Shown here in pieces: positions 3,719 to 28,814 of a DNA stretch of 64,000 nt. The DNA comes from Podarcis vaucheri (taxonomy: Eukaryota). The notes under the pieces were generated by a model. It saw only the letters and a program-made list of their open reading frames with translations. It made no database searches and was not told the DNA's origin. The stretch is from NCBI GenBank assembly GCA_965113315.1, contig OZ220373.1; one strand, given 5' to 3'. Numbering within the stretch: position 1 is the first letter of the stretch; each line of letters opens with the position of its first letter. The translations under genes were made by a program, and so were the position numbers.

Positions 3719-3918
3719 NNNNNNNNNNNNNNNNNNNNNNNNNNNNNNNNNNNNNNNNNNNNNNNNNNNNNNNNNNNNNNNNNNNNNNNNNNNNNNNNNN
3801 NNNNNNNNNNNNNNNNNNNNNNNNNNNNNNNNNNNNNNNNNNNNNNNNNNNNNNNNNNNNNNNNNNNNNNNNNNNNNNNNNNNNNNNNNNNNNNNNNNNN
3901 NNNNNNNNNNNNNNNNNN
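3719..3918. other. Assembly gap (200 N)
   Basis: Run of exactly 200 n. Confidence 0.99.
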
Positions 3919-17486: not shown

Positions 17487-18817
17487 CTGTGAGAGAGCAA
17501 GGCATTAGTAAGTCAAAAGGTCTTGGCAACCAGGAAACAGCACAATGCATGCACACACACAGAGAGAGAGCGCAAATCCTAACTACACCAGGCCAAAGCA
17601 TCAAATGGAAACTCTAGCCAAGCAAATGTCTCTTGCACATTGCAGCCACTGTTCTCAGTCGCCCGCCACTTCCAGGTTTGTGTTTGCAATTTTTGTGCTG
17701 GGCCTAAGCCTCTGGACCCTATTGATATATCAATCAGGAACTGATAGCATCATCTGCTGCGCATCCTGTAAGTTGTTCACAGGCCATAAGAAAATTAAGA
17801 ATGGCAGCAAAAGTTTTGTGCGCATTGAACCTCTAAACTGCTAAGCTCAACACCTTCTCACAACAACGTTTGCCCCTAGCATGTCAACTGCACGTGGATT
17901 CTGGGACATGAGGGTTTCATCTTCACTCCCATTTCATTAACACATTCTTAAGTTTCTCCAGCAGCTGAGAATGGATCCTGTTGTAGCTGCCGTTTAGAAA
18001 AATCAGCCCTGTCTTCCAGCACAACATGGGCCCATTGCTGTTGCTGCTTGGGAGTGACTGATTATTATAAGGTTGGAGTTACTGCACCAGGAGCTGTTAA
18101 TTCAACAAGACACCCACACTCTCTCTCTCTCTCCATTGTGGAATTCTAAGAGGGAAGGGGCACAAATGCTTCTGGGCCGCTATTGAAGTGCCGCCTGGCT
18201 TTTGGCAGCCCACATAGGCAGAGACAGCTGCAAGAGGACCCAAGGCAGCTACACTCTGAAAATCCCATCTATTCCTTGGAAAACAGGCTGGGCAGAAAGG
18301 AAAATGCTTGAAGCAGGATCCCTGCTGGGCCAGTTGTCTAGAGATGGCGGGTGAGGAGGGCAGATTTAGCAATGATTTTAGTGACTAGCAGTTCTGTAAC
18401 TAGGGATGGGCAGCAAGAACACCGGCCCCAATCATCCCCCGGACAGGGGTAAACAGGGAGCAAAAGTCACCTAATATACTGATAGCTGTAACATGAAATC
18501 ACTGCAATTCTCTTCAATAGGGAATAATTAAGCATGTTTTTGAGATACGGTAAACTAGAAAACCAGTTATCAGCTTGCTTGGAGACCTAATGGGGACACC
18601 AAGGATCTCCTCATTGGCTCCAGATGCCTGCAGCCTAACGCAGAAAAGCACATTCAGCTAATGCCGCTGAATACAGCTGGTAAAAGTAGAGAAAAACGGA
18701 ATCATGTTAGCTGGGCAGTAACAGCTTCCGAGCAGCAAGAACTGGATGTTTCGGCATTAGTACCTTTAATAGTCCACGGCCATGTTTAACTTGTCCTGGT
18801 GGGAGGGGGGAGGTTTT

Positions 18818-19045
18818 AATCACAGAATCTTAGCAAGGCAGAGTTGGAAGGGACCCCCAGGGGTCATCCAGCCCAACCCCCTAAATGCAGGAATCACAGC
18901 TCAAGAATCCATGACAGATGGCCAGGCAACCTCTGCTTAGAAACCTCCAAGAAAGGAGAGTCCACCAACTCCCCAGGGAGTCTGTTCAACAGCTGCTACT
19001 GTCAGAAAGCTTTCGTCTGCTGTTTCATCGGAATCCCCTTCTGGG
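18818..19045 (-). mobile_element. CR1 LINE 3'-end fragment
   Basis: acagaatc...gagttggaagggaccccc...catccagcccaacccc, same family as 46718 and 62674. Confidence 0.7.
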
Positions 19046-19566
19046 TGTAGAAAAGTTATGCTGCAGGGGACTGAACTGCAACCACTGAAACAGCTTTTGC
19101 TGCCATCTGGGTCTCTCTCCCATCTTAAAACGTGGATGCCTTGTATGTTGTCTAACTAAGCTTCCTGCAAACCAAGAGAGCCCCCGATTTCCTTCCTCCC
19201 ACCATGTCATCTAGAGGTACAAGTCATTTTCTCTCACACACAATTAGGCTACGGAAGGTTAATGAAACTAATACTCAAAGCAGCCCACTCACAAGGACAC
19301 AGCACAAACGGAGAGCAAAGGGGAAGAGTCACTGCAGCCTTTTGGAACACAGGAAACCAGAAGTTGAGGAGGAGAAGGGCAGGAGAGGCTCTGGGTGGGC
19401 AGTCTAGCAACTAGCGTCCACAACTCTACCTACCACTGGGTACTACTAATGCCAAACACAGCCTAGAGGAGTCTGATCTACGAGGTCAGGCATCTACCGT
19501 TACGGCACTTGCATTATAAATGGCTCACAAGTTGGCACCATTTATCATGCTGTTTTGGCTACTGGC

Positions 19567-22500
19567 CTTTTCTTCCTGAGTGGCTCAGGGCTACTCTGCT
19601 CCGCTGGCTGCAGTCCAGTAGCAAGTGTTTCCGTTTCTGGACAAGGGACACTTTCCTTCTGCTCTGCTTCATCCTGAACCTGCGTGGCGCCTTCTGCTGG
19701 TTCCTCCAAGGGGAGCCCAGGAGGCTCACTGGAAATGGCGCTTGGCTCATCTTCCGTTTCTCTGGAGACCTCAAGCTCCAGCTCCTTGTTGGGCACAACC
19801 GGGATGTCAGGCGTGGGGCCATCAAAGCCTTCGTTGCTCTTGCTGTCGGGCTGCTTAGAAGAAAGGTCTGAATCAGCAGCACTGTCAGCTGGCTGCTCAG
19901 AGGCAGAGAGGTTGGGGCTCCCATCAGCACCGGTCACATCCACTGCTTGTTCCTCGGCTTTTGAGACAGCTTCTGGTGCCTTCAAATCCAGTTTGGATGA
20001 AGCCATTGGGGCCACCTCCTGTTTGGAGGAAGCTTTTGGTGTTGGCACATCTGGTTCCTTCTTGAGACCCGCCTCCTTGGCATCTTTCTGCCACGGAAAT
20101 GAGAAGTCCAGCTTCTTTCCAAACACAGCACCCGGAGTGGCCTCTACTTTACCTGCTTTCTCATCACTTCCTCCGCCAAACAGACTTGAGGAAAACTTGT
20201 TGAAGCTGGACACCAGGCCTGGCTCAGGCGCAGGCTTGCTTGCTGAAGGCGGCTGTGCAGAGAAGAAGGAGCCAAATGGCTTGCTGCTGTCTGCAGAAGA
20301 CATGAAGCCGAATTTGGGCAAAGTGGGCATGCTTGGAATTTCAAACATGGGCTTGGTGCTGCTGGTCTCTGCAGGAGCACTGGCTGGCTTGCTCTGGCCA
20401 GCCAAACTGCTTTTCAAGGGAGCAGCTTCTGGGGCTGCTGCGCTGACGGTTAGAGGCTCTTTCTGCTCAGGAGGAAGATCAGGTTTTATTTCAGGGACCT
20501 TTTCCATATCCTGACGGGGCAAGTCACGGGCCTCATCTGCAGCAGCTTTGGGTTCCATCTCCAGGGTCCCAAACGTGTCTGGTGGGCAAATATCAACATC
20601 TGCCTCATTCTTTATAGTTACTTCTTCAGTGGTTAGTGAAGTATCCGTCAGTTCTGGCAGTTTCAGGTGTTCATCTTCCTCACCAACCTTGGGTTCCAGC
20701 TCACATGTACCGCCCAAATCCATTTGGCCAATGTCTGTTTCTCCTGCCGGGCTCAATTGCTCTTCAACAGCAGGGACAGCATCATTTTCTGAGGGCTCCA
20801 CAGGCACTTCACTCTTCTCCTGCAGCACCACCGTCTCAACTGCATCCTGTCCCTCTTGACTACATGGGGCAGCCTTCCCTGCTTCATCAGATGCCAGTAA
20901 GTTTGTGTCCAGCTGCACCACTTCAGGGCCCTGACCCCTACTTGAGTCTAAAGTTTCTGAAGCATTAAGGGAGGGTTCCAGACCATGTCCAGGTCTTCCA
21001 CTGCTTTCAGCTTCCAATTCTGCCGTACATTCTTTTCCCAAACTCTCATCTGCTAAAGCAGAAGGGGCGTCTTGTTTCAAGTCACTGCTAGCTTCTTTCT
21101 CTGTAGGTTCAGCCCTAGAGGTTTGGTCCGGTTGTTTCAAAACGCTGCCAGCATTTGTCCCTAAAAGTTCATCCCTAGAGGCTTTATCTTCTTTTGCGAG
21201 ACCTTTACCAGGAACTGGGCCCACGGCCTCCTTTGCCCTGGAGCTCATTTCCTGGGGTTTTGAAGTGCCTGCGGTCTTCCCTGCAGGCTTTGAAAGGGTC
21301 TCGTCTGTTGCTCCTTTAAAAATGCCAAAGAGATCACTTGTAAATGCTGGAGGAGGCCCAGTGGGCAGGGAGGAAAGGCCGAAAAACGAAGTGCTCTTCT
21401 TTTGGGCACTAGGAGCTGCTGGAGTCTGAGGCTGGGAAAAGAAGCCAGATAATGTTTTGGTTGGTTTCATCTTTGTCATGAAGCTGGAAAACATTTCAAC
21501 TGAGGAATCTAGAACGGATTTGTCAGCCTCAGGCTCTTTAGGTTTCTCCTGCAGGTGAGGTGTTGCTGCTGCCATTTGAGGGAGAGGCCTCTGGCCCCGA
21601 GTCTGCTGCTCTCCGGCAGTATTTGGGGTCCTGTCAGGTTGCTTGGGCTCCGGGGGCTTGACTTCAGGGAGGCTTGGTTTTTCTTCAGGTACAACCTCCT
21701 GCGAAAGGTCTCCAGGAGCAGGCGATGGCTCAAGAGCCACAGGAGTCTCATTACAAACTGGACCGGGCTCTGCCTTTTCAGAAGTCTCGTTCCCACCTGA
21801 CGGAACAAATTCCTTCTCAGAGGGCACCACAATACCGTCACTCTTTTCTGCCTTGTCTTGCAGCTGCTCCTCTGGTTGTGGAATCTCCGGAAGGGAAGGT
21901 GGCATGTCTTCCTGCAGCGTAGGGACCTGAGAGCCAGGATCAGGACAGACTGAGTGGTCTTCCCTATCTGTACCATCATCAGGAGGTTTACTGGCCACAA
22001 AAGGTATCTCTACCTCATTTTTCGCTTCTGAAGCACTTGCCACAGCATGCTCAGCCGCAGGAGTTTTTAGCTCACTTGCCTTCTGCTCCAGGCCATCAGC
22101 CTCCTGCTTTCCAAGTACTGCTTCTACAACACCAGCCGCTGCCTCTTTATCCTTCAAGCCCTGCTGTCTGGCAAGTCCAATGCCAGAGTCAACAGAAACA
22201 CACTGCTTCATAGATGGCTTTGCGTCTGCTTGCTGTTGAGGCGGCCTTCCCAGGTTGCTTGCCTGCTGCTGAGGTGGCTTTGCAATAGTCCCCTTTTCAG
22301 GAGCAGCTGCCGGTGGCTTGTCATCCAGGAAGGAGGGCAGGTTGAAAAAGCTGAAGCTGGAGCTGCTCTGAGGCACGTTCTTCTTTGCGGTGGGCCCTCC
22401 GGAAAAGAAAGAAGGCATCTTGAACAGACCCTCTGCTTCCGGGGGCTTGGCGTTAGGAGCTGCTGGAGCTGGGGCAGGGGCTTTCTCTGGGGCACCGAAG

Positions 22501-25500
22501 AAGGAGGAGAAGATGCTCTTGCCAGCCGGCTGCGGTCCCTGCAGAGGCTTCGAAGGTGCTGCCTGCGACAAGCCAAAAGGCAGGCTGAACCCAGAATCCC
22601 TGGGTGGCTGGCTGCCTTTTCCTGGCTGAGTTTTACCAGGTATGGCTCCTGCACGGCCTTGCGGTCCCGCTGCAACAGCTGGTCCGTGGCCATGCTGCCC
22701 TGGAGAGCGATTTGCCTGGTCCATTCGAGGGCCTGCCTGCATGGGAGGCTTGGGTTCTGCATTCCCTGCGATGGGGATGTCCTCCTTCTTCACTTGAGCA
22801 GCTTCCTTGCCTACTTTCCCATGCTGTACTTCCTTAGGGACTGTGGGCTTCTGGGCAGCTTCCCCACGAGCCTGCTCCACGGGGATTCGAGGGGCAGGAG
22901 TGCTGCTCTTACTTGGCTCTCTGCTACGCTGGTCCGCGTTGTCATTCGGTTTCAGGGAGCTGTGGGTTCCACTCTTTGGCGGAGCAGGGGCTGCATCAAC
23001 TTTGAAAAGATCTCCTATGGAACCAAAGAATGATGAAATGCCTGGGGGCTCCACTTTCTCCTGAGGCATTTTCTTCTCGGCTTCGTTTTTCGTCAGATTT
23101 GGTTGGGGTGCTGGTGGTGGCTGTGGGGCTTTGTTGACCTGCGTTTTAAAGAAATCAAAGAACCCGGGGCCTTGACTTTTATTGGGGGCTGCAGGTGTGG
23201 AGGAGTCTTCTCCCAGGCTGAGAATCTTGAGAGCACTTTTAAACAACGTGCCCTCAGCCTCCGTGGGCGCTTGGCTGGGGGCTGGCTGGGTTTTCTTGGG
23301 CTCATCCTCACCCACTTTGGGTTTTTGTTGACTTGGGAGGGGAGCAGGCTTCACACTTTTATCCAGCTGACTGGTCTTGCTGTCCAGGGGACCCTGGCTT
23401 AGCTGAGAGGAAGACCTCACCAGCTGAGGCCTTTTCTGAGAAATCACTGGCTTTTCATCCCTAACAGACTTAACTAATCTGCCTCTCTCTTTTCTCTCTT
23501 GTTCATGCTCAGTGTGCTGCTGGTTTTGCACATCCTCTCCTGTTTTCCTGGGTGGCGAAGCTGGAAGAGCATCGTTTTTGTGTCCCAACACCACCGGTTC
23601 TCCTTTCTTCACAGCCGTGTCTTCCACTGTCTCATGCACTTCCATACCCTTACCCATCAGGCCACCCAAAGCAGAGAATAAAGATGCAACTTTATTCAGA
23701 GGTGGCTTTTTATCTTCTTCAGTGGTTTTGACTTCTGTAACACTCTGAGATGCCGATGAAGGCTCAGGCTTAGCAGAAGACTGGAATATATGGAAACCAA
23801 ACCGTCTTGACTGTCCACTTTCGGAAACTGTCACAGCAGGGGTCCTGTCCGGATGTTTGGGTAGAGCATCATCTTTTAGCCTCCCACTGGAAGCCACCCT
23901 GGAGTGAACTCTAAGGTCAAGGGTCAGGGGAGGCTCTTCTGAGTGCCACTCCATGTCATTCTCAGGCCTGAAGTCTACTTTGAGTTTTTGAAGTTTGTAC
24001 CCTGAAAAGTCTAAAGGCTGCTCTCTCTGGTAATAAATGGACTCCTCAAACATCTGCGAAAAGGTCTCTAAATTCATGTTCATAAGTTGATCACTTCTCT
24101 GCAGAGCTACAGACAAATCAAGTGGTTTGTTTACAGAGTAATTATCCAATTGCTCCTCTTCAGCAAACCAGAATAACTCGTCTTCATTACCAAGAGGCAC
24201 TTTGAAACCGCAAACGGCAATCATGTCATCTTCCAAGACAGTGCTCTGCAAAATGCTCTGCGGATAATTATAATCCCAGTAGTCTGGGTAGGTGTAAGTG
24301 TCAGGAGTGCAAATGTAGACATACTGCCCAGTGGGGTCGGTGAGCAGGGAATAAACAAACTGGCCGTCCCTGTACATGTAATATCCACAATCGCCATCTT
24401 CCGACGGCCACCACACGCCCTTCTCAAGCAGCACCAGCCAGTCCTGGTACTCCTGGCTATAAGATGAATAGACAAAACTGCCCTCCAGGCTCAAGGACTC
24501 CTGATCAATTAAGGTCCACATATTGCCATCACATGCCGATGAATAGCTCAAGTCCATGGGCATCTCTTCCAAAATATAGCTGCAGTCATCAAATGGAGGA
24601 AGATTTCCATTCAGAGAATGCGTTGCCCACATTTCAGTTTCTTCTAGACCTAAATCTTGTAAGTCTAACTGATCAAACGATTCGTGTGACATGACACTGA
24701 AATCCATGCTCAGGGCATCAAAATTGGCATTTGACCTCCAATCCACGACATTGGCATTGCCATCTTTTTTACACAAGTTCACTACGGCATCACTGGAGTC
24801 TGGCCATTCCAGAAACTCAGCCAGTGGGACAGAATTCTGCTGCAAGACGTAGTAAACGGGCAAGGAAACCTGGTGGGCATTGAGAGAAAATGCTCCTGCA
24901 TCATATTCCCAGTCAAAGCTAGAGTGGCTCCTTGTTTCCTCAAGAGTAAGATGCTGCTCTGAGTGGCCATACAATTTAGCATTCAGCAAAGAGGAATTGA
25001 GAAATTCATTTGACCTTTCGTTGAGAACTGCTTGATAAATATTGGAATCCATAGGTTGTCTATAAAGAGTCGGCTGCCCCGATAAGTCTTGTATCTTTGG
25101 CTGTGAGCTTAAAGCATTCTGAGAGGGGGGGTGCCAAGGGACGGGACCATGTCCGTTGTCCCTTTTGCTCAGTTCTGGGTGAGGAAAATGACCATTCGCC
25201 TTCGCAGTCTCAGTCACTGCCTCCTCCGCTTTTTCTTTTGGCCTCTGCATGAAGTTCTTTATGAAGCTGCCCGTCTCCGGTTTCCCCCCAGTGCTTTCTT
25301 GGGGACCAGGAGTCACATGTGAGCCAGCAGACTTGTCACCAGAACTAGTCTCTTCGCTCCTCTCAAAAAACTTCATTATGCCCAGAGAGCCTGGTTTTGC
25401 CTTATCTGGCATACTTTCGGTCAGGTTTTCACTTGAAGCAAACCTAAATAATCCGGAAAGTAAGCCAGCTGATCTGCTCTTCTGGCTGTCCGTTTCATTT

Positions 25501-28368
25501 TTAGCATTTGACTCTTCCGTGTGGGTTATGTGGTCTGAAGACGCCTGCCGGAAGAGGCCCGAGAGCAACCCCTGCCCTGGCTGTGGGGGCTTCTTCGGAG
25601 TATCATCCATTACCTGGTCCTCTCTGATTCCACCAGGAACCACTGGCTGTCCTGCTGTGGTATTTAAGTCAGGTTCTTTTGTGGGGGCTGTCAGCTCCCC
25701 CCTGCATTTGGAATCTTTGTGGTCCAGAGCACCCATGCGTTTGGTATCATGATCCATGTGTGCAATTTTTGAAGTGCCTGAGGCACCCTGGTCTTTATCT
25801 CCATGTTTTAGTGCACCCAGACCATCTTCTTTACCGGTTTCTTTCTTCCTCGTTGGCTCCTCTTTTCTCTGCGGTGCCTCAGGAACTGCCTGAGACTTTG
25901 ACGAGTCCATTTTGGCAGCTTCCACGTTGCTGCTTTTGTGACCCGCTTCAGCATTTGGTGGCTTGCCACTAAAACTTGGTGGGGCAGTTTGATCTTTTGA
26001 AGCTGTCAGGTTTTCCACAGAAGCAGCTTTCAAGAAGGAAGTGAAAATTCCTGGCTTCTCTTTGATGTCCTGCGGTGGTTTGTCTGAAAAGCCAAAACCG
26101 CTCAAAAAGGGAATCTGGAGCTTACCGGTGAAAGGGAAGTTGGGTTCGCTGCTTGCGGAGCTTGTTTTCCTGACATCATCTTCAGAACGGTGACTTTTCC
26201 CCAAGCCCGGTGGTGGCTCCTTTGGCACAGTTTCGGTAGCAGAAGAAGGGAGCAGCAACTGGCTGAAGGATTTCTTAAGTGGGCTGAAAAAGCTCTCAGA
26301 TGGTTCCCCCTGCTCCAACGGCAGAGCGTTACCAGTCTCCTTCTTGGCTTCACTTGGCTTGTTTTCTGGCACTTTCCCTGCAGGTTGTGGATTTCTTGGC
26401 ATGTCTGGGTGTTCTTTAACAACTTTATCTGGCTGACTTGTGGCCTGCGGCGGCACATCAGAAGCCTTCTGTGGCCCACTTGGCTGCTTGGGAACAGCCA
26501 GACTCTCAAAACTGGCTTTCAAGCTAAAAGAACTAACGGAGCTCGACAGCTTGCCAAAGATGGAGGAGACGGGGCCGCTGCTTGCGCTCGCTTCTGCCTC
26601 GCTCTTGCTCGTTTCGGGAGGCGCAACGTTGGTGGGTTTTGTCGCGTTGCCTTCAGCTTCCTTCCCACCTGCCTTGGCTTCAGAAGCACTGGCATGCGTG
26701 GCTTCCACCTTCACAGCCTCCTCCTGTTTTGCAGTCTCTTTTTTCGGTGCTTCCTTTTCGGAGAAGATTTTCAAAGGGTTGAAGATGCCCAAGACGGAGT
26801 TCACGACTGAGCTGGGGTCCAGAGAAGGGGGCGGAGCAGCGTTTGCTGAAGCATCGTGGACACTTGGAGGAGCCTTGTCGTCTCCCGCCGTCTTTTCTGG
26901 GATGCTGGCCTTGGCATCACCGGCTTCTCGCTCACGGCTACTCTGGGTCACAGAAGGGGCAGTTGCCGTGGGCAACCTGGCATCCGATTTGCTCTCTGCT
27001 TTCAGTTCCGGAGAGGCACCCTCAGACTTAGGCTTACTTGAAAACAGACTTATGATGCCTCCCTCGGGTTGACCAGGGGCTTCAGGTTTCTCTGGTGTGG
27101 GAGATACAAGTTTTTCAACTGAGGCTGTTAAGTGCTTTGTTCCTGAGCCCACTTTTTCGGTGAAAGAACTAAATAAGGAGCTGACCGTGTTCTTCACCCC
27201 AGACAAGTCTGGCAGTGCCTCTGTTATGCCTTTGCTGCCCTCGCTCTCCTCTGCGGCAGAAGCGGCTGGCTTTGCCTGTTCCAAAGGGGCACTTTCCTCC
27301 GCCAGCTTATCAGCCCCGGCCAGTTTGGGAGAGGCACCATCGCTTGCATTTTTGCTCGCAGGAAGGGTTTCAAATTTGCTAATCTCCTCCTCTTTTTCAG
27401 CTAAGTATTCAGACACAGTTTCAACTAAGCACTGCAGTTCATCCATTGTGTCCACATATTCTTCCGTTGGCTCTTCAACAGGAGAGAGGGTCAAGTCTTG
27501 CTTAAGAAAGCCGTGCTTTCCTCCTCTCATCCTATGTGAGTTTTTGTCCCTTGGTAACAGGGATATGGCACTTCCAGTATGGGCGTCAGTAAGGTCTCCA
27601 ACATGGCGAACACTGGATTCACGCCATGCTTGGGAAAGTATTGCTATTTCTTCCATTTCATCATCATCATCTGAAACTGGGGAGTACAGGAGTATGCTGG
27701 ATGAACAGCTGCCAAACTCTTTAAGGGCACCCAATGGCACAAAAGAGTGAGCTGGCTGTTCTGAATGGATCTCATTTTCACCATCAAAATGGACTGATCC
27801 TGAGTCATGCTTTGCGCGTTGGTTAGCGGACAACTTGCCACTCTTGACTAGAAGGCCATTCTTGTATGGACGCAGAACTGGATATTCCGGTAACTGTTCT
27901 TCACTTTCAATGGGGCTGCTGCCCCATTTCTCAGTTTCATCATAATCAGGATATAGGTTATGTTCAGTTCTTGCTTTAATGCTGCCTGATGAAAATCTCC
28001 GGTTACCACTGCTTTGCAGTACAGTTCGCTCGCATTCTTCAAAATTGTTATATCTCAGCTTCTTCTTTCTTCTCCTGTCTATTGTGTCATATTCCTCTGG
28101 ATAGCAAGGAACATCGGGATGTCCTGATTCTGGGCAAGGCTTCCGTGAGTATCTTGCTCTTTCAGGATGGCCAAAGTTCTCCCTTTTTGAGAGCCTCGGG
28201 CTCCTTCGTCCCTGTGAACTTCTAGTCCTGTGACTTTTTTCTAAAAAATCTTCTATTAACTGTTTGCCTAATTCCTCATAGTTCTCTTCACACTCTTCCT
28301 GTTCTTGGCCAACTTCGTAATCAAATGGAATGATCCTGACTTTCCCATTGCTAACTAAAGATCCTGGT
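19567..28368 (-). CDS. UNC13B: Giant alternative coding exon of UNC13B (8,802 nt, 2,934 codons; 3' boundary tentative)
   Basis: Stop-free 2,992-aa ORF 19545..28523. An ~80-nt polypyrimidine tract ending ...acgtatcag|ACCAGG gives a phase-2 entry matching the upstream exon. The proposed donor AAAAG|gccagt at 19567 is phase 2 and matches the downstream exon. Confidence 0.85.
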
Positions 28369-28814
28369 CTGATACGTGTGGAGAGGGAAAATATAAGAAG
28401 GACAGAAGGGCAAAGAAAAAAAGGAAAGAGCAGGAGGGGTGAAAAAAGAGCTTTAAACACAAAACTTGCAAAGGAGCATTTCATAAAGACCAAATGATAT
28501 CGTGAATCACATGCAGAAAGCATATTAAAATATCATAACAACGAACCCATTTATTAACACGAAATGTTAGGAATCTCTCTTTTACTATTATTGCAGCTAA
28601 ATAGTAGGGTTGTAAGGGTAGGAGAGCATGAAACATGTATACCACTGTTATGTATACTATAAAGTGATATATGGTATGTTATTTATAAGCTTCTGTTAAG
28701 AACAGGAATTGCAAATTAAAAATGTCAATAAGCAGCTACCTAAAATGTTACAAGTCACTTTCTGGAGCGTCTCAACGGAGTTTATCCCACAGAAAGCAAT
28801 GATGGCCACCAACT

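Follow-up and report, generated by a model that had tools for sequence, protein, structure and literature searches.

A conserved cluster of PXDLS/T-type motifs in a giant UNC13B exon as candidate docking sites for CtBP-family proteins

How the vesicles held at a synaptic ribbon are handed over to the machinery that primes and fuses them is an unsolved question. A stretch of 64,000 nucleotides from the lizard Podarcis vaucheri (assembly GCA_965113315.1, contig OZ220373.1), here called the window in its full length, suggests one possible route. A first-pass annotation had proposed that the window carries a giant exon of the gene for the priming factor Munc13-2, and that this exon encodes several PxDLS-type motifs through which the protein could dock on CtBP1 or on RIBEYE, the ribbon scaffold. 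Is there such an exon, do its motifs amount to anything beyond chance, and could they be ligands of the CtBP family? We find that four of the motifs stand out from their surroundings by conservation, and that two of these are putative CtBP-family docking sites.

The window is the UNC13B (Munc13-2) locus of a lacertid lizard, read on the minus strand. It holds a single long minus-strand open frame, at 19545-28532 (2,995 codons), and the assignment follows from the central part of that frame, whose best match, Zootoca vivipara unc-13 homolog B isoform X1, is 95% identical. The full-length orthologue models bear PF00168, PF00130 and PF06292. Orthologue proteins placed on the window by tblastn gave the exon map below.

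56455-48972, minus strand: C2A-domain exons
30584-30363, minus strand: a further exon
28368-19567, minus strand: giant alternative UNC13B exon, 8,802 nucleotides (3 x 2,934), with equal phase at both ends
17485-17345 and 16735-16616, minus strand: small downstream exons

The giant Munc13-2 exon is thus borne out, both by UNC13B orthology and by its 8,802 in-phase nucleotides. It is placed between the exons of the RIM-binding C2A domain and those leading toward the C1-C2B-MUN-C2C priming module. A strong polypyrimidine tract and an AG acceptor lie immediately upstream of 28368, and at the other end AAG is followed by GCCAGT, a GC donor, at 19567/19566. If that donor is left unused, an in-frame TGA is reached 20 nucleotides on, at 19545-19547. 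A Pfam scan of the whole giant exon returned no family, and a full-text literature search found no paper describing the exon.

All the motifs named in the first-pass annotation are present in the minus-strand frame, the four principal ones at exactly the coordinates given there. We number these four as sites 1 to 4. They fall within a core of 421 amino acids, and all are read from the open-frame translation.

23853-25115, minus strand: core holding the motif cluster, open-frame amino acids 1140-1560
24546-24560, minus strand: site 1, PMDLS, canonical PXDLS
24111-24125, minus strand: site 2, PLDLS, canonical PXDLS
24003-24017, minus strand: site 3, PLDFS, PXDLS-like with Phe at position 4 (within QPLDFSGY, 23997-24020)
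23910-23924, minus strand: site 4, TLDLR, without Pro
24765-24785, minus strand: VVNLCKK, not a canonical CtBP motif
24696-24710, minus strand: SMDFS
25080-25094, minus strand: IQDLS
21702-21716, minus strand: PGDLS
27201-27215, minus strand: LPDLS, with Pro at position 2 and hence outside the PxDLS register

A pattern as short as PxDLS invites the objection that a long exon of low complexity has yielded the matches by chance, or that the exon itself is an annotation artefact that is never translated. We estimated the first effect with 5000 composition-preserving shuffles. Strict P.DLS occurs three times in the giant exon against 0.15 expected (P ~2e-4), and twice in the 421-residue core against 0.027; P[LMIV]DLS is found twice in the exon against 0.022. 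A looser pattern, [PT][LMIV]D[LF][SR], which was defined post hoc, gives four matches for 0.06 expected. A version of the broad ELM regular expression shows no significant enrichment over the whole exon (2 observed, 1.1 expected), a point in favor of chance, and is enriched in the core (2 against 0.11, P ~0.007).

Conservation among tetrapods was examined in an alignment of 36 sequences, made up of the window and 35 named orthologues from squamates, turtles, birds, marsupials, placentals, a frog and a salamander. Our alignments leave out unnamed Logan-derived clusters that are possibly human (P0096, for example), and no human sequence was compared. Mean identity to the window is mostly 0.15-0.5 along the exon and rises to 0.5-0.75 in the core of about 400 residues, which is the best-conserved stretch of the exon apart from amino acids 354-403 and 454-503; its identity to the tetrapod orthologues ranges from 42 to 95%. 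Within the core, the four sites rise further. Site 1, as P[MI]DLS, has a mean identity of 0.90 (98.0 percentile of the 5-mers of the exon) between flanks of ±20 residues that average 0.54; the corresponding figures are 0.98, 99.6 percentile and 0.69 for site 2 (PLDLS), 0.99, 99.9 percentile and 0.65 for site 3 (PLDFS), and 0.90, 98.2 percentile and 0.37 for site 4 (xLDLR). The only runs of four or more residues in the core at 85% identity or above are WWPSEDG, YSLLTD, TGQY, PLDLS, TFSQ, QPLDFSGY and LDLR. Site 1 reads P[MIVL]DL[ST] in 35 of the 36 tetrapods.

The remaining motifs fare differently. VVNLCKK is moderately conserved as [VAI]-x-N-[LF]-C-[KQ]-K (mean identity 0.71, 90th percentile). 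SMDFS, at the 66th percentile, keeps the form S-x-D-[LF]-S in sauropsids only and is SVIWC in placental mammals; IQDLS, at the 73rd, becomes LLEKS and the like in mammals; PGDLS is lineage-specific, at the 13th percentile and in one sequence of the 36; and DSDLS, also in this exon, is not conserved. LPDLS was rightly reported as present and is moderately conserved, other clades having FPELN or LPELT, yet its Pro falls outside the register. Comparison with the flanks, which the first-pass annotation had named as the way to judge its cluster, therefore upholds PMDLS, PLDLS, PLDFS and xLDLR (98-99.9 percentile, above their flanks) and not IQDLS, SMDFS or PGDLS. The unconserved pentapeptides PGDLS, IQDLS, DSDLS and SMDFS are what one would expect of chance matches. 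Yet dozens of vertebrates, ranging from shark to primates, conserve the 2,995-codon frame in phase, and we give chance or artefact virtually no prospect of accounting for the cluster. A chance origin was rejected on the near-invariance of the four core motifs and on the enrichment of strict P.DLS given above.

The cluster is also old. With the 421-residue core as query, exhaustive HMMER searching of 1.84 billion cluster representatives matched only 65 proteins, and all of those whose names were checked are UNC13B-type giant proteins; the named matches come from cat shark, sturgeon, bowfin, arowana and several teleosts. By sequence, the core seems to be confined to UNC13B and to occur in no other gene. 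The four sites are also found in Scyliorhinus, Acipenser, Amia, Scleropages, other teleosts and frogs, and the shark reads PMDLS, PLDLS, PLDFS and FDLR at the same four places. Judged from these sequences, motifs and core have been conserved for roughly 450 million years.

A set of 80 jawed-vertebrate sequences (shark, sturgeon, bowfin, teleosts, frogs and amniotes) shows which positions vary. Site 2 fits P-x-[DN]-L-[ST] in 72 of the 80: P is found in 78, D or N in all 80, L in 79 (with F as the single replacement) and either S or T in 75; position 2 is the variable one, with L, V, M, I or E. Site 1 fits the same pattern in 57 of 80. It is present in shark, sturgeon, bowfin, frogs and one teleost paralogue, is PIDLS in mammals, and never loses its L wherever it is recognizable. 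Site 3 takes the form P/A/G-x-D-F-S/T, with F at position 4 in 75 and D in 76 sequences. At site 4, x-x-D-L-R/T/S, D is invariant (80/80) and L nearly so (75/80); amniotes end it in R, fishes and frogs in T or S. Across an aromatic core, 145 residues separate sites 1 and 2, and about 29-32 separate sites 3 and 4; the 36 residues from site 2 to site 3 are constant from shark to lizard. Teleosts have two divergent versions of the core (orthologues P0156-P0178), which are probably unc13ba and unc13bb. In one of them, sites 1 and 2 are both of the PVDLT type, site 1 being P[VIML]DLT and often having A[MVL]DLS nine residues on; the other keeps PLDLS at site 2 and has no canonical site 1, with a PPNLS-like sequence farther upstream. 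Some teleost models are 5,000-6,600 residues long.

Sites 1 (P-[MIVL]-D-L-[ST]) and 2 (P-[LVMIE]-[DN]-L-[ST]) thus carry the PXDLS/T sequence feature, which sites 3 and 4 lack. P, D/N, L and S/T are fixed and position 2 is free and hydrophobic; the substitutions seen at the first two (L, M, V or I; D to N; S to T) correspond to the spectrum that CtBP tolerates in PXDLS/T, and on their sequence we take both to be genuine linear motifs of this class. The literature agrees with the premises from which the docking idea had been drawn: PXDLS/T is a ligand of the CtBP/RIBEYE-B cleft, Piccolino uses several motifs of this kind to bind RIBEYE, and ubMunc13-2 occurs at the active zones of rod ribbons. 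A full-text search turned up no report connecting Munc13-2 or UNC13B to PXDLS motifs or to the binding of CtBP, in keeping with the annotator's statement that no description was known. The docking interpretation itself is sustained in part, since the conservation test succeeds at four sites; only two of these are canonical, and the weaker variants are unconserved.

We tentatively propose, as a reading about evenly poised between right and wrong, that giant Munc13-2 is tethered to CtBP1 or RIBEYE by sites 1 and 2, acting as docking motifs for the CtBP family with help from the degenerate sites 3 and 4. Sites 1 and 2 would be the putative docking motifs proper, and sites 3 and 4, lying 36 and 67 residues beyond site 2, would add weaker contacts as the degenerate motifs of Piccolino do. 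The outcome would be a bi- or multivalent attachment of the giant isoform to CtBP1/RIBEYE at active zones or ribbons. For this, CtBP or RIBEYE would have to be the partner, the motifs exposed, and the exon expressed where CtBP/RIBEYE is synaptic, all of which we infer.

Piccolino offers the closest analogy. It has six to seven PXDLS motifs, arranged periodically with about 25 and 45 residues between them, that bind RIBEYE-B and crosslink its filaments, and a single motif is insufficient to promote RIBEYE filament assembly (10.64898/2026.04.28.721253). Motif variants that are degenerate by a single residue contribute to RIBEYE binding, as recounted in PMC10760060. Like Piccolino, giant Munc13-2 would be a giant presynaptic isoform with several conserved PXDLS/T-type motifs tens of residues apart, and the Piccolo motif PVDLT (PMC10760060) is the very one found at sites 1 and 2 in teleosts. 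The two genes and sequences are unrelated, however. UNC13B has two canonical and two or three degenerate motifs instead of six to seven; its spacings are 145, 36 and 31 residues, not an alternation of about 25 and 45; and its motifs flank a small aromatic core. The spacers between sites 2 and 3 and between sites 3 and 4 are within the Piccolino range of about 25-45 residues, the 36-residue one being predicted to be helical. Bassoon, cited as interacting with RIBEYE and CtBP1, is likewise an active-zone protein that docks the CtBP family through the PXDLS cleft, as proposed for UNC13B; Bassoon is a scaffold, whereas UNC13B would bring a priming factor.

Could the same residues be conserved for reasons of folding? 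Two other segments of the core invite the question.

24198-24413, minus strand: aromatic core rich in Trp, Tyr and Cys, WWPSEDG...YSLLTD...TGQY...CGFKV, between sites 1 and 2, with invariant or near-invariant residues
24039-24074, minus strand: NLETFSQMFEES, a conserved block with a predicted helix, lying between sites 2 and 3

AlphaFold2 was run on the 421-residue core with an alignment of 26 sequences (mean predicted local distance difference test score, pLDDT, 30.8) and on the 241 residues that span sites 1 to 4, using 31 diverse sequences (mean pLDDT 43.8), both alignments being built from full-length orthologues. The aromatic core, alone in being modelled with moderate confidence (pLDDT 60-70), forms a helix and a four-strand meander. 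Sites 1, 2 and 4 appear as coil at a pLDDT of about 30-37, in models of low overall confidence. A helix of about 30 residues (model residues 165-195) spans NLETFSQMFEES, with site 2 at its start, and a strand (203-209, pLDDT 50-64) follows site 3 directly. Searches with the core found no match in the PDB by sequence at E values up to 10 and no usable match in the ESM Atlas; Foldseek against the PDB with the 241-residue model returned nothing below an E of 0.5, as expected of a weak model.

These predictions give substance to the alternative that the pentapeptides are structural parts of an undescribed domain, or of one that folds upon binding, in which the aromatic core would combine with the long helix and the strand. 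Conservation would then serve folding or intramolecular packing and not CtBP docking. Such a domain would account for the fact that site 2, NLETFSQMFEES and site 3 are conserved as one whole block with fixed spacing, for the Phe instead of Leu at position 4 of site 3, and for the predicted secondary structure itself. Against it, sites 1 and 4 are islands of conservation in poorly conserved, low-confidence flanks (0.54 and 0.37), the usual signature of linear motifs, and no known fold was matched. Moreover, P, D/N, L and S/T stay fixed at sites 1 and 2, with S/T swaps common and position 2 unconstrained, a pattern that fits a ligand motif better than a buried strand. We consider a purely structural role doubtful, with a real chance nonetheless of being correct. 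On the models, sites 1 and 4 have the appearance of isolated linear motifs of the classical kind, and site 2 that of a canonical motif bordering a structured element; site 3 may be partly structural, because the predicted strand follows it directly.

If the sites are linear motifs, they need not be read by RIBEYE. Nuclear CtBP ligands with PLDLS or PIDLS motifs include adenovirus E1A, ZEB, ZNF217, RIP140 and RAI2, and the tandem ALDLS motifs of RAI2 polymerize CtBP. The PLDLS of E1A is the pentapeptide of site 2, the PIDLS of nuclear ligands is mammalian site 1, and the multivalency of UNC13B resembles that of RAI2. UNC13B, in contrast, is cytosolic and presynaptic, with no transcriptional role expected, and neither site 1 nor site 2 has the Lys or Arg by which the motif is often followed in nuclear ligands. 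One could also envision a different partner that reads hydrophobic-D-[LF]-[S/T/R], or else binding of CtBP1/BARS at conventional synapses, the Golgi or endosomal membranes. The four sites share such a pattern with KVDFR and SxD[LF]S: x-hydrophobic-D-[LF]-[STR] has these six matches in the core against 0.18 expected. Two of the four sites, furthermore, lack the Pro or the Leu thought necessary for CtBP, and nothing in the sequencing reads points to use of the exon in ribbon-bearing cells. However, CtBP1 and RIBEYE are established residents of the presynapse that bind Bassoon and Piccolo through this same cleft. No other protein is known to us to read motifs of the PLDLS or PMDLS type, and we regard another partner or another compartment as unlikely.

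The reads concerned are those of related species, compared together with their contigs over 19101-25100; no dataset listed as containing this DNA is recorded as RNA. Contigs from small runs of a related species span the whole interval unbroken and cross the end of the exon without a break, as either captured DNA or unspliced or read-through RNA would. A second study yielded patchy contigs, all inside the giant exon, and a single-cell RNA run from another relative gave seven reads inside the exon, all of them gene-strand. No internal joints were seen between 19101 and 25100 in the runs examined. This evidence is compatible with transcription of the giant exon.

What protein would carry the motifs is a further question. 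Orthologue models fall into two classes, one of about 4,100-4,900 residues that runs on into the C1, C2 and MUN domains, the other of about 3,200 residues that has the C2A domain only and terminates after the giant exon. The TGA at the exon end is exactly where Zootoca isoform X1 terminates, as do many models from birds, lizards and macaque. A C2A-plus-giant-exon protein of about 3,200 residues, without C1 and MUN, is therefore predicted from sequence as a Piccolino-like truncation, the many models ending after the exon paralleling the C-terminal truncation of Piccolino, and it would be an alternative carrier of the docking sites. Being products of the same gene, ubMunc13-2 and the giant isoform share the C2A exons (56455-48972, 30584-30363), and the full-length giant models share the C1/C2B/MUN/C2C module with the known Munc13-2 isoforms. 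Neither described isoform, ubMunc13-2 or bMunc13-2, contains the giant exon, unless its 5' part encodes the bMunc13-2 N-terminus. ELKS1 recruits bMunc13-2 through a short N-terminal coiled-coil motif, residues 145-187 (PMC5379939), and ubMunc13-2 is recruited by RIM; a CtBP/RIBEYE anchor would be a third mode. In the 5' part of the exon, MDELQCLVETVSEYLAEKEEEI (27381-27446, minus strand, open-frame amino acids 363-384) is among the most conserved blocks, with at least 85% identity over tetrapods. From its sequence it looks like a coiled coil, and it is a candidate for the ELKS1-binding motif of bMunc13-2 being encoded there. A homologue search with amino acids 200-520 found giant-exon models only, among the 120 matches listed.

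Several observations weigh against CtBP/RIBEYE docking as proposed here. By sequence, the canonical motif is matched by only two of the four core sites, the weaker variants of the first-pass annotation (IQDLS, SMDFS, PGDLS) are unconserved, and canonical site 1 is lost in one teleost paralogue. In the models, site 3, with its constant Phe and rigid distance to site 2, adjoins a predicted strand, and site 2 abuts a conserved predicted helix, so that the conservation is possibly in part structural; at mean pLDDT values this low, a disordered and exposed state of the motifs is itself a prediction. The support for transcription is thin, consisting of the seven sense-strand reads and of contigs of uncertain molecule type. 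Finally, a MINFLUX preprint detects ubMunc13-2 immunoreactivity at the rod ribbon active zone alongside RIM2, Bassoon and CAST, and places it at the ribbon base with RIM2 and CAST, not throughout the ribbon.

A bolder version of the docking proposal can be formulated, in which the giant or the C2A-plus-exon form of Munc13-2 is a second Piccolino-like organizer of release sites at ribbons and active zones. The N-terminal C2A domain would bind RIM, and the central PXDLS cluster would dock multivalently on RIBEYE-B/CtBP1. Amphipathic segments on either side would hold vesicles that the C-terminal MUN module of the full-length form would then prime, so that ribbon tethering and priming would be physically coupled in one polypeptide. 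The exon does encode many Ser/Gly/Phe-rich, amphipathic-looking segments (20169-27179, minus strand), several of them conserved; their sequences include SLFSSFTEKVGSG, GLLSGLFR (twice), ISSFFGSIGDLFK, SIFSSFFG and EGLFKMPSFFSGG. Examples, picked by the look of the sequence, are:

27141-27179, 25548-25571, 25443-25466, 23001-23039 and 22494-22517, minus strand: Ser/Gly/Phe segments
22395-22433, 21465-21500, 21312-21335 and 20169-20216, minus strand: further Ser/Gly/Phe segments

In Piccolino, an ALPS motif (for amphipathic lipid packing sensor) binds vesicles (PMC13394108), and the Ser/Gly/Phe segments resemble it by look. Piccolino is also a mostly disordered scaffold, as the UNC13B segment may be. 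We hold the organizer scheme to be improbable.

Two more segments of the exon deserve mention. FDWEYD (24900-24917, minus strand, open-frame amino acids 1206-1211) is FEWEYE or FEWDSD in other clades with a near-invariant Trp, and resembles a W-acidic motif of the kind that binds kinesin light chain. A basic patch, DRRRKK (28062-28079, minus strand, open-frame amino acids 152-157), is at least 85% conserved in tetrapods, with the consensus YDTIDRRRKKK; judging by its composition, it could be nuclear-localization-like or bind phospholipids or calmodulin. Outside the exon, 200 N at 3719-3918 mark an assembly gap or masked sequence. A contig from a related species joins 19237 straight to about 18725, and the roughly 500 nucleotides absent there (about 18725-19236) hold the repeat-like gggttgggctggatgacccctgggggtcccttccaactc in the window; the extra stretch is probably a lineage-specific intron insertion of the short interspersed nuclear element or CR1 type.

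These findings draw attention to a segment of UNC13B of about 2,900 residues, conserved over some 450 million years, for which our full-text searches found no description. In humans UNC13B is associated with disease, and variants in the giant exon are therefore uninterpretable at present. The giant Munc13-2 isoform becomes a candidate further presynaptic PXDLS-bearing protein beside Piccolino and Bassoon, in this case a priming factor. A conserved PXDLS cluster in a Munc13 gene would provide a mutable handle, by changing DL to AS, on the direct anchoring of a priming factor to RIBEYE/CtBP1.

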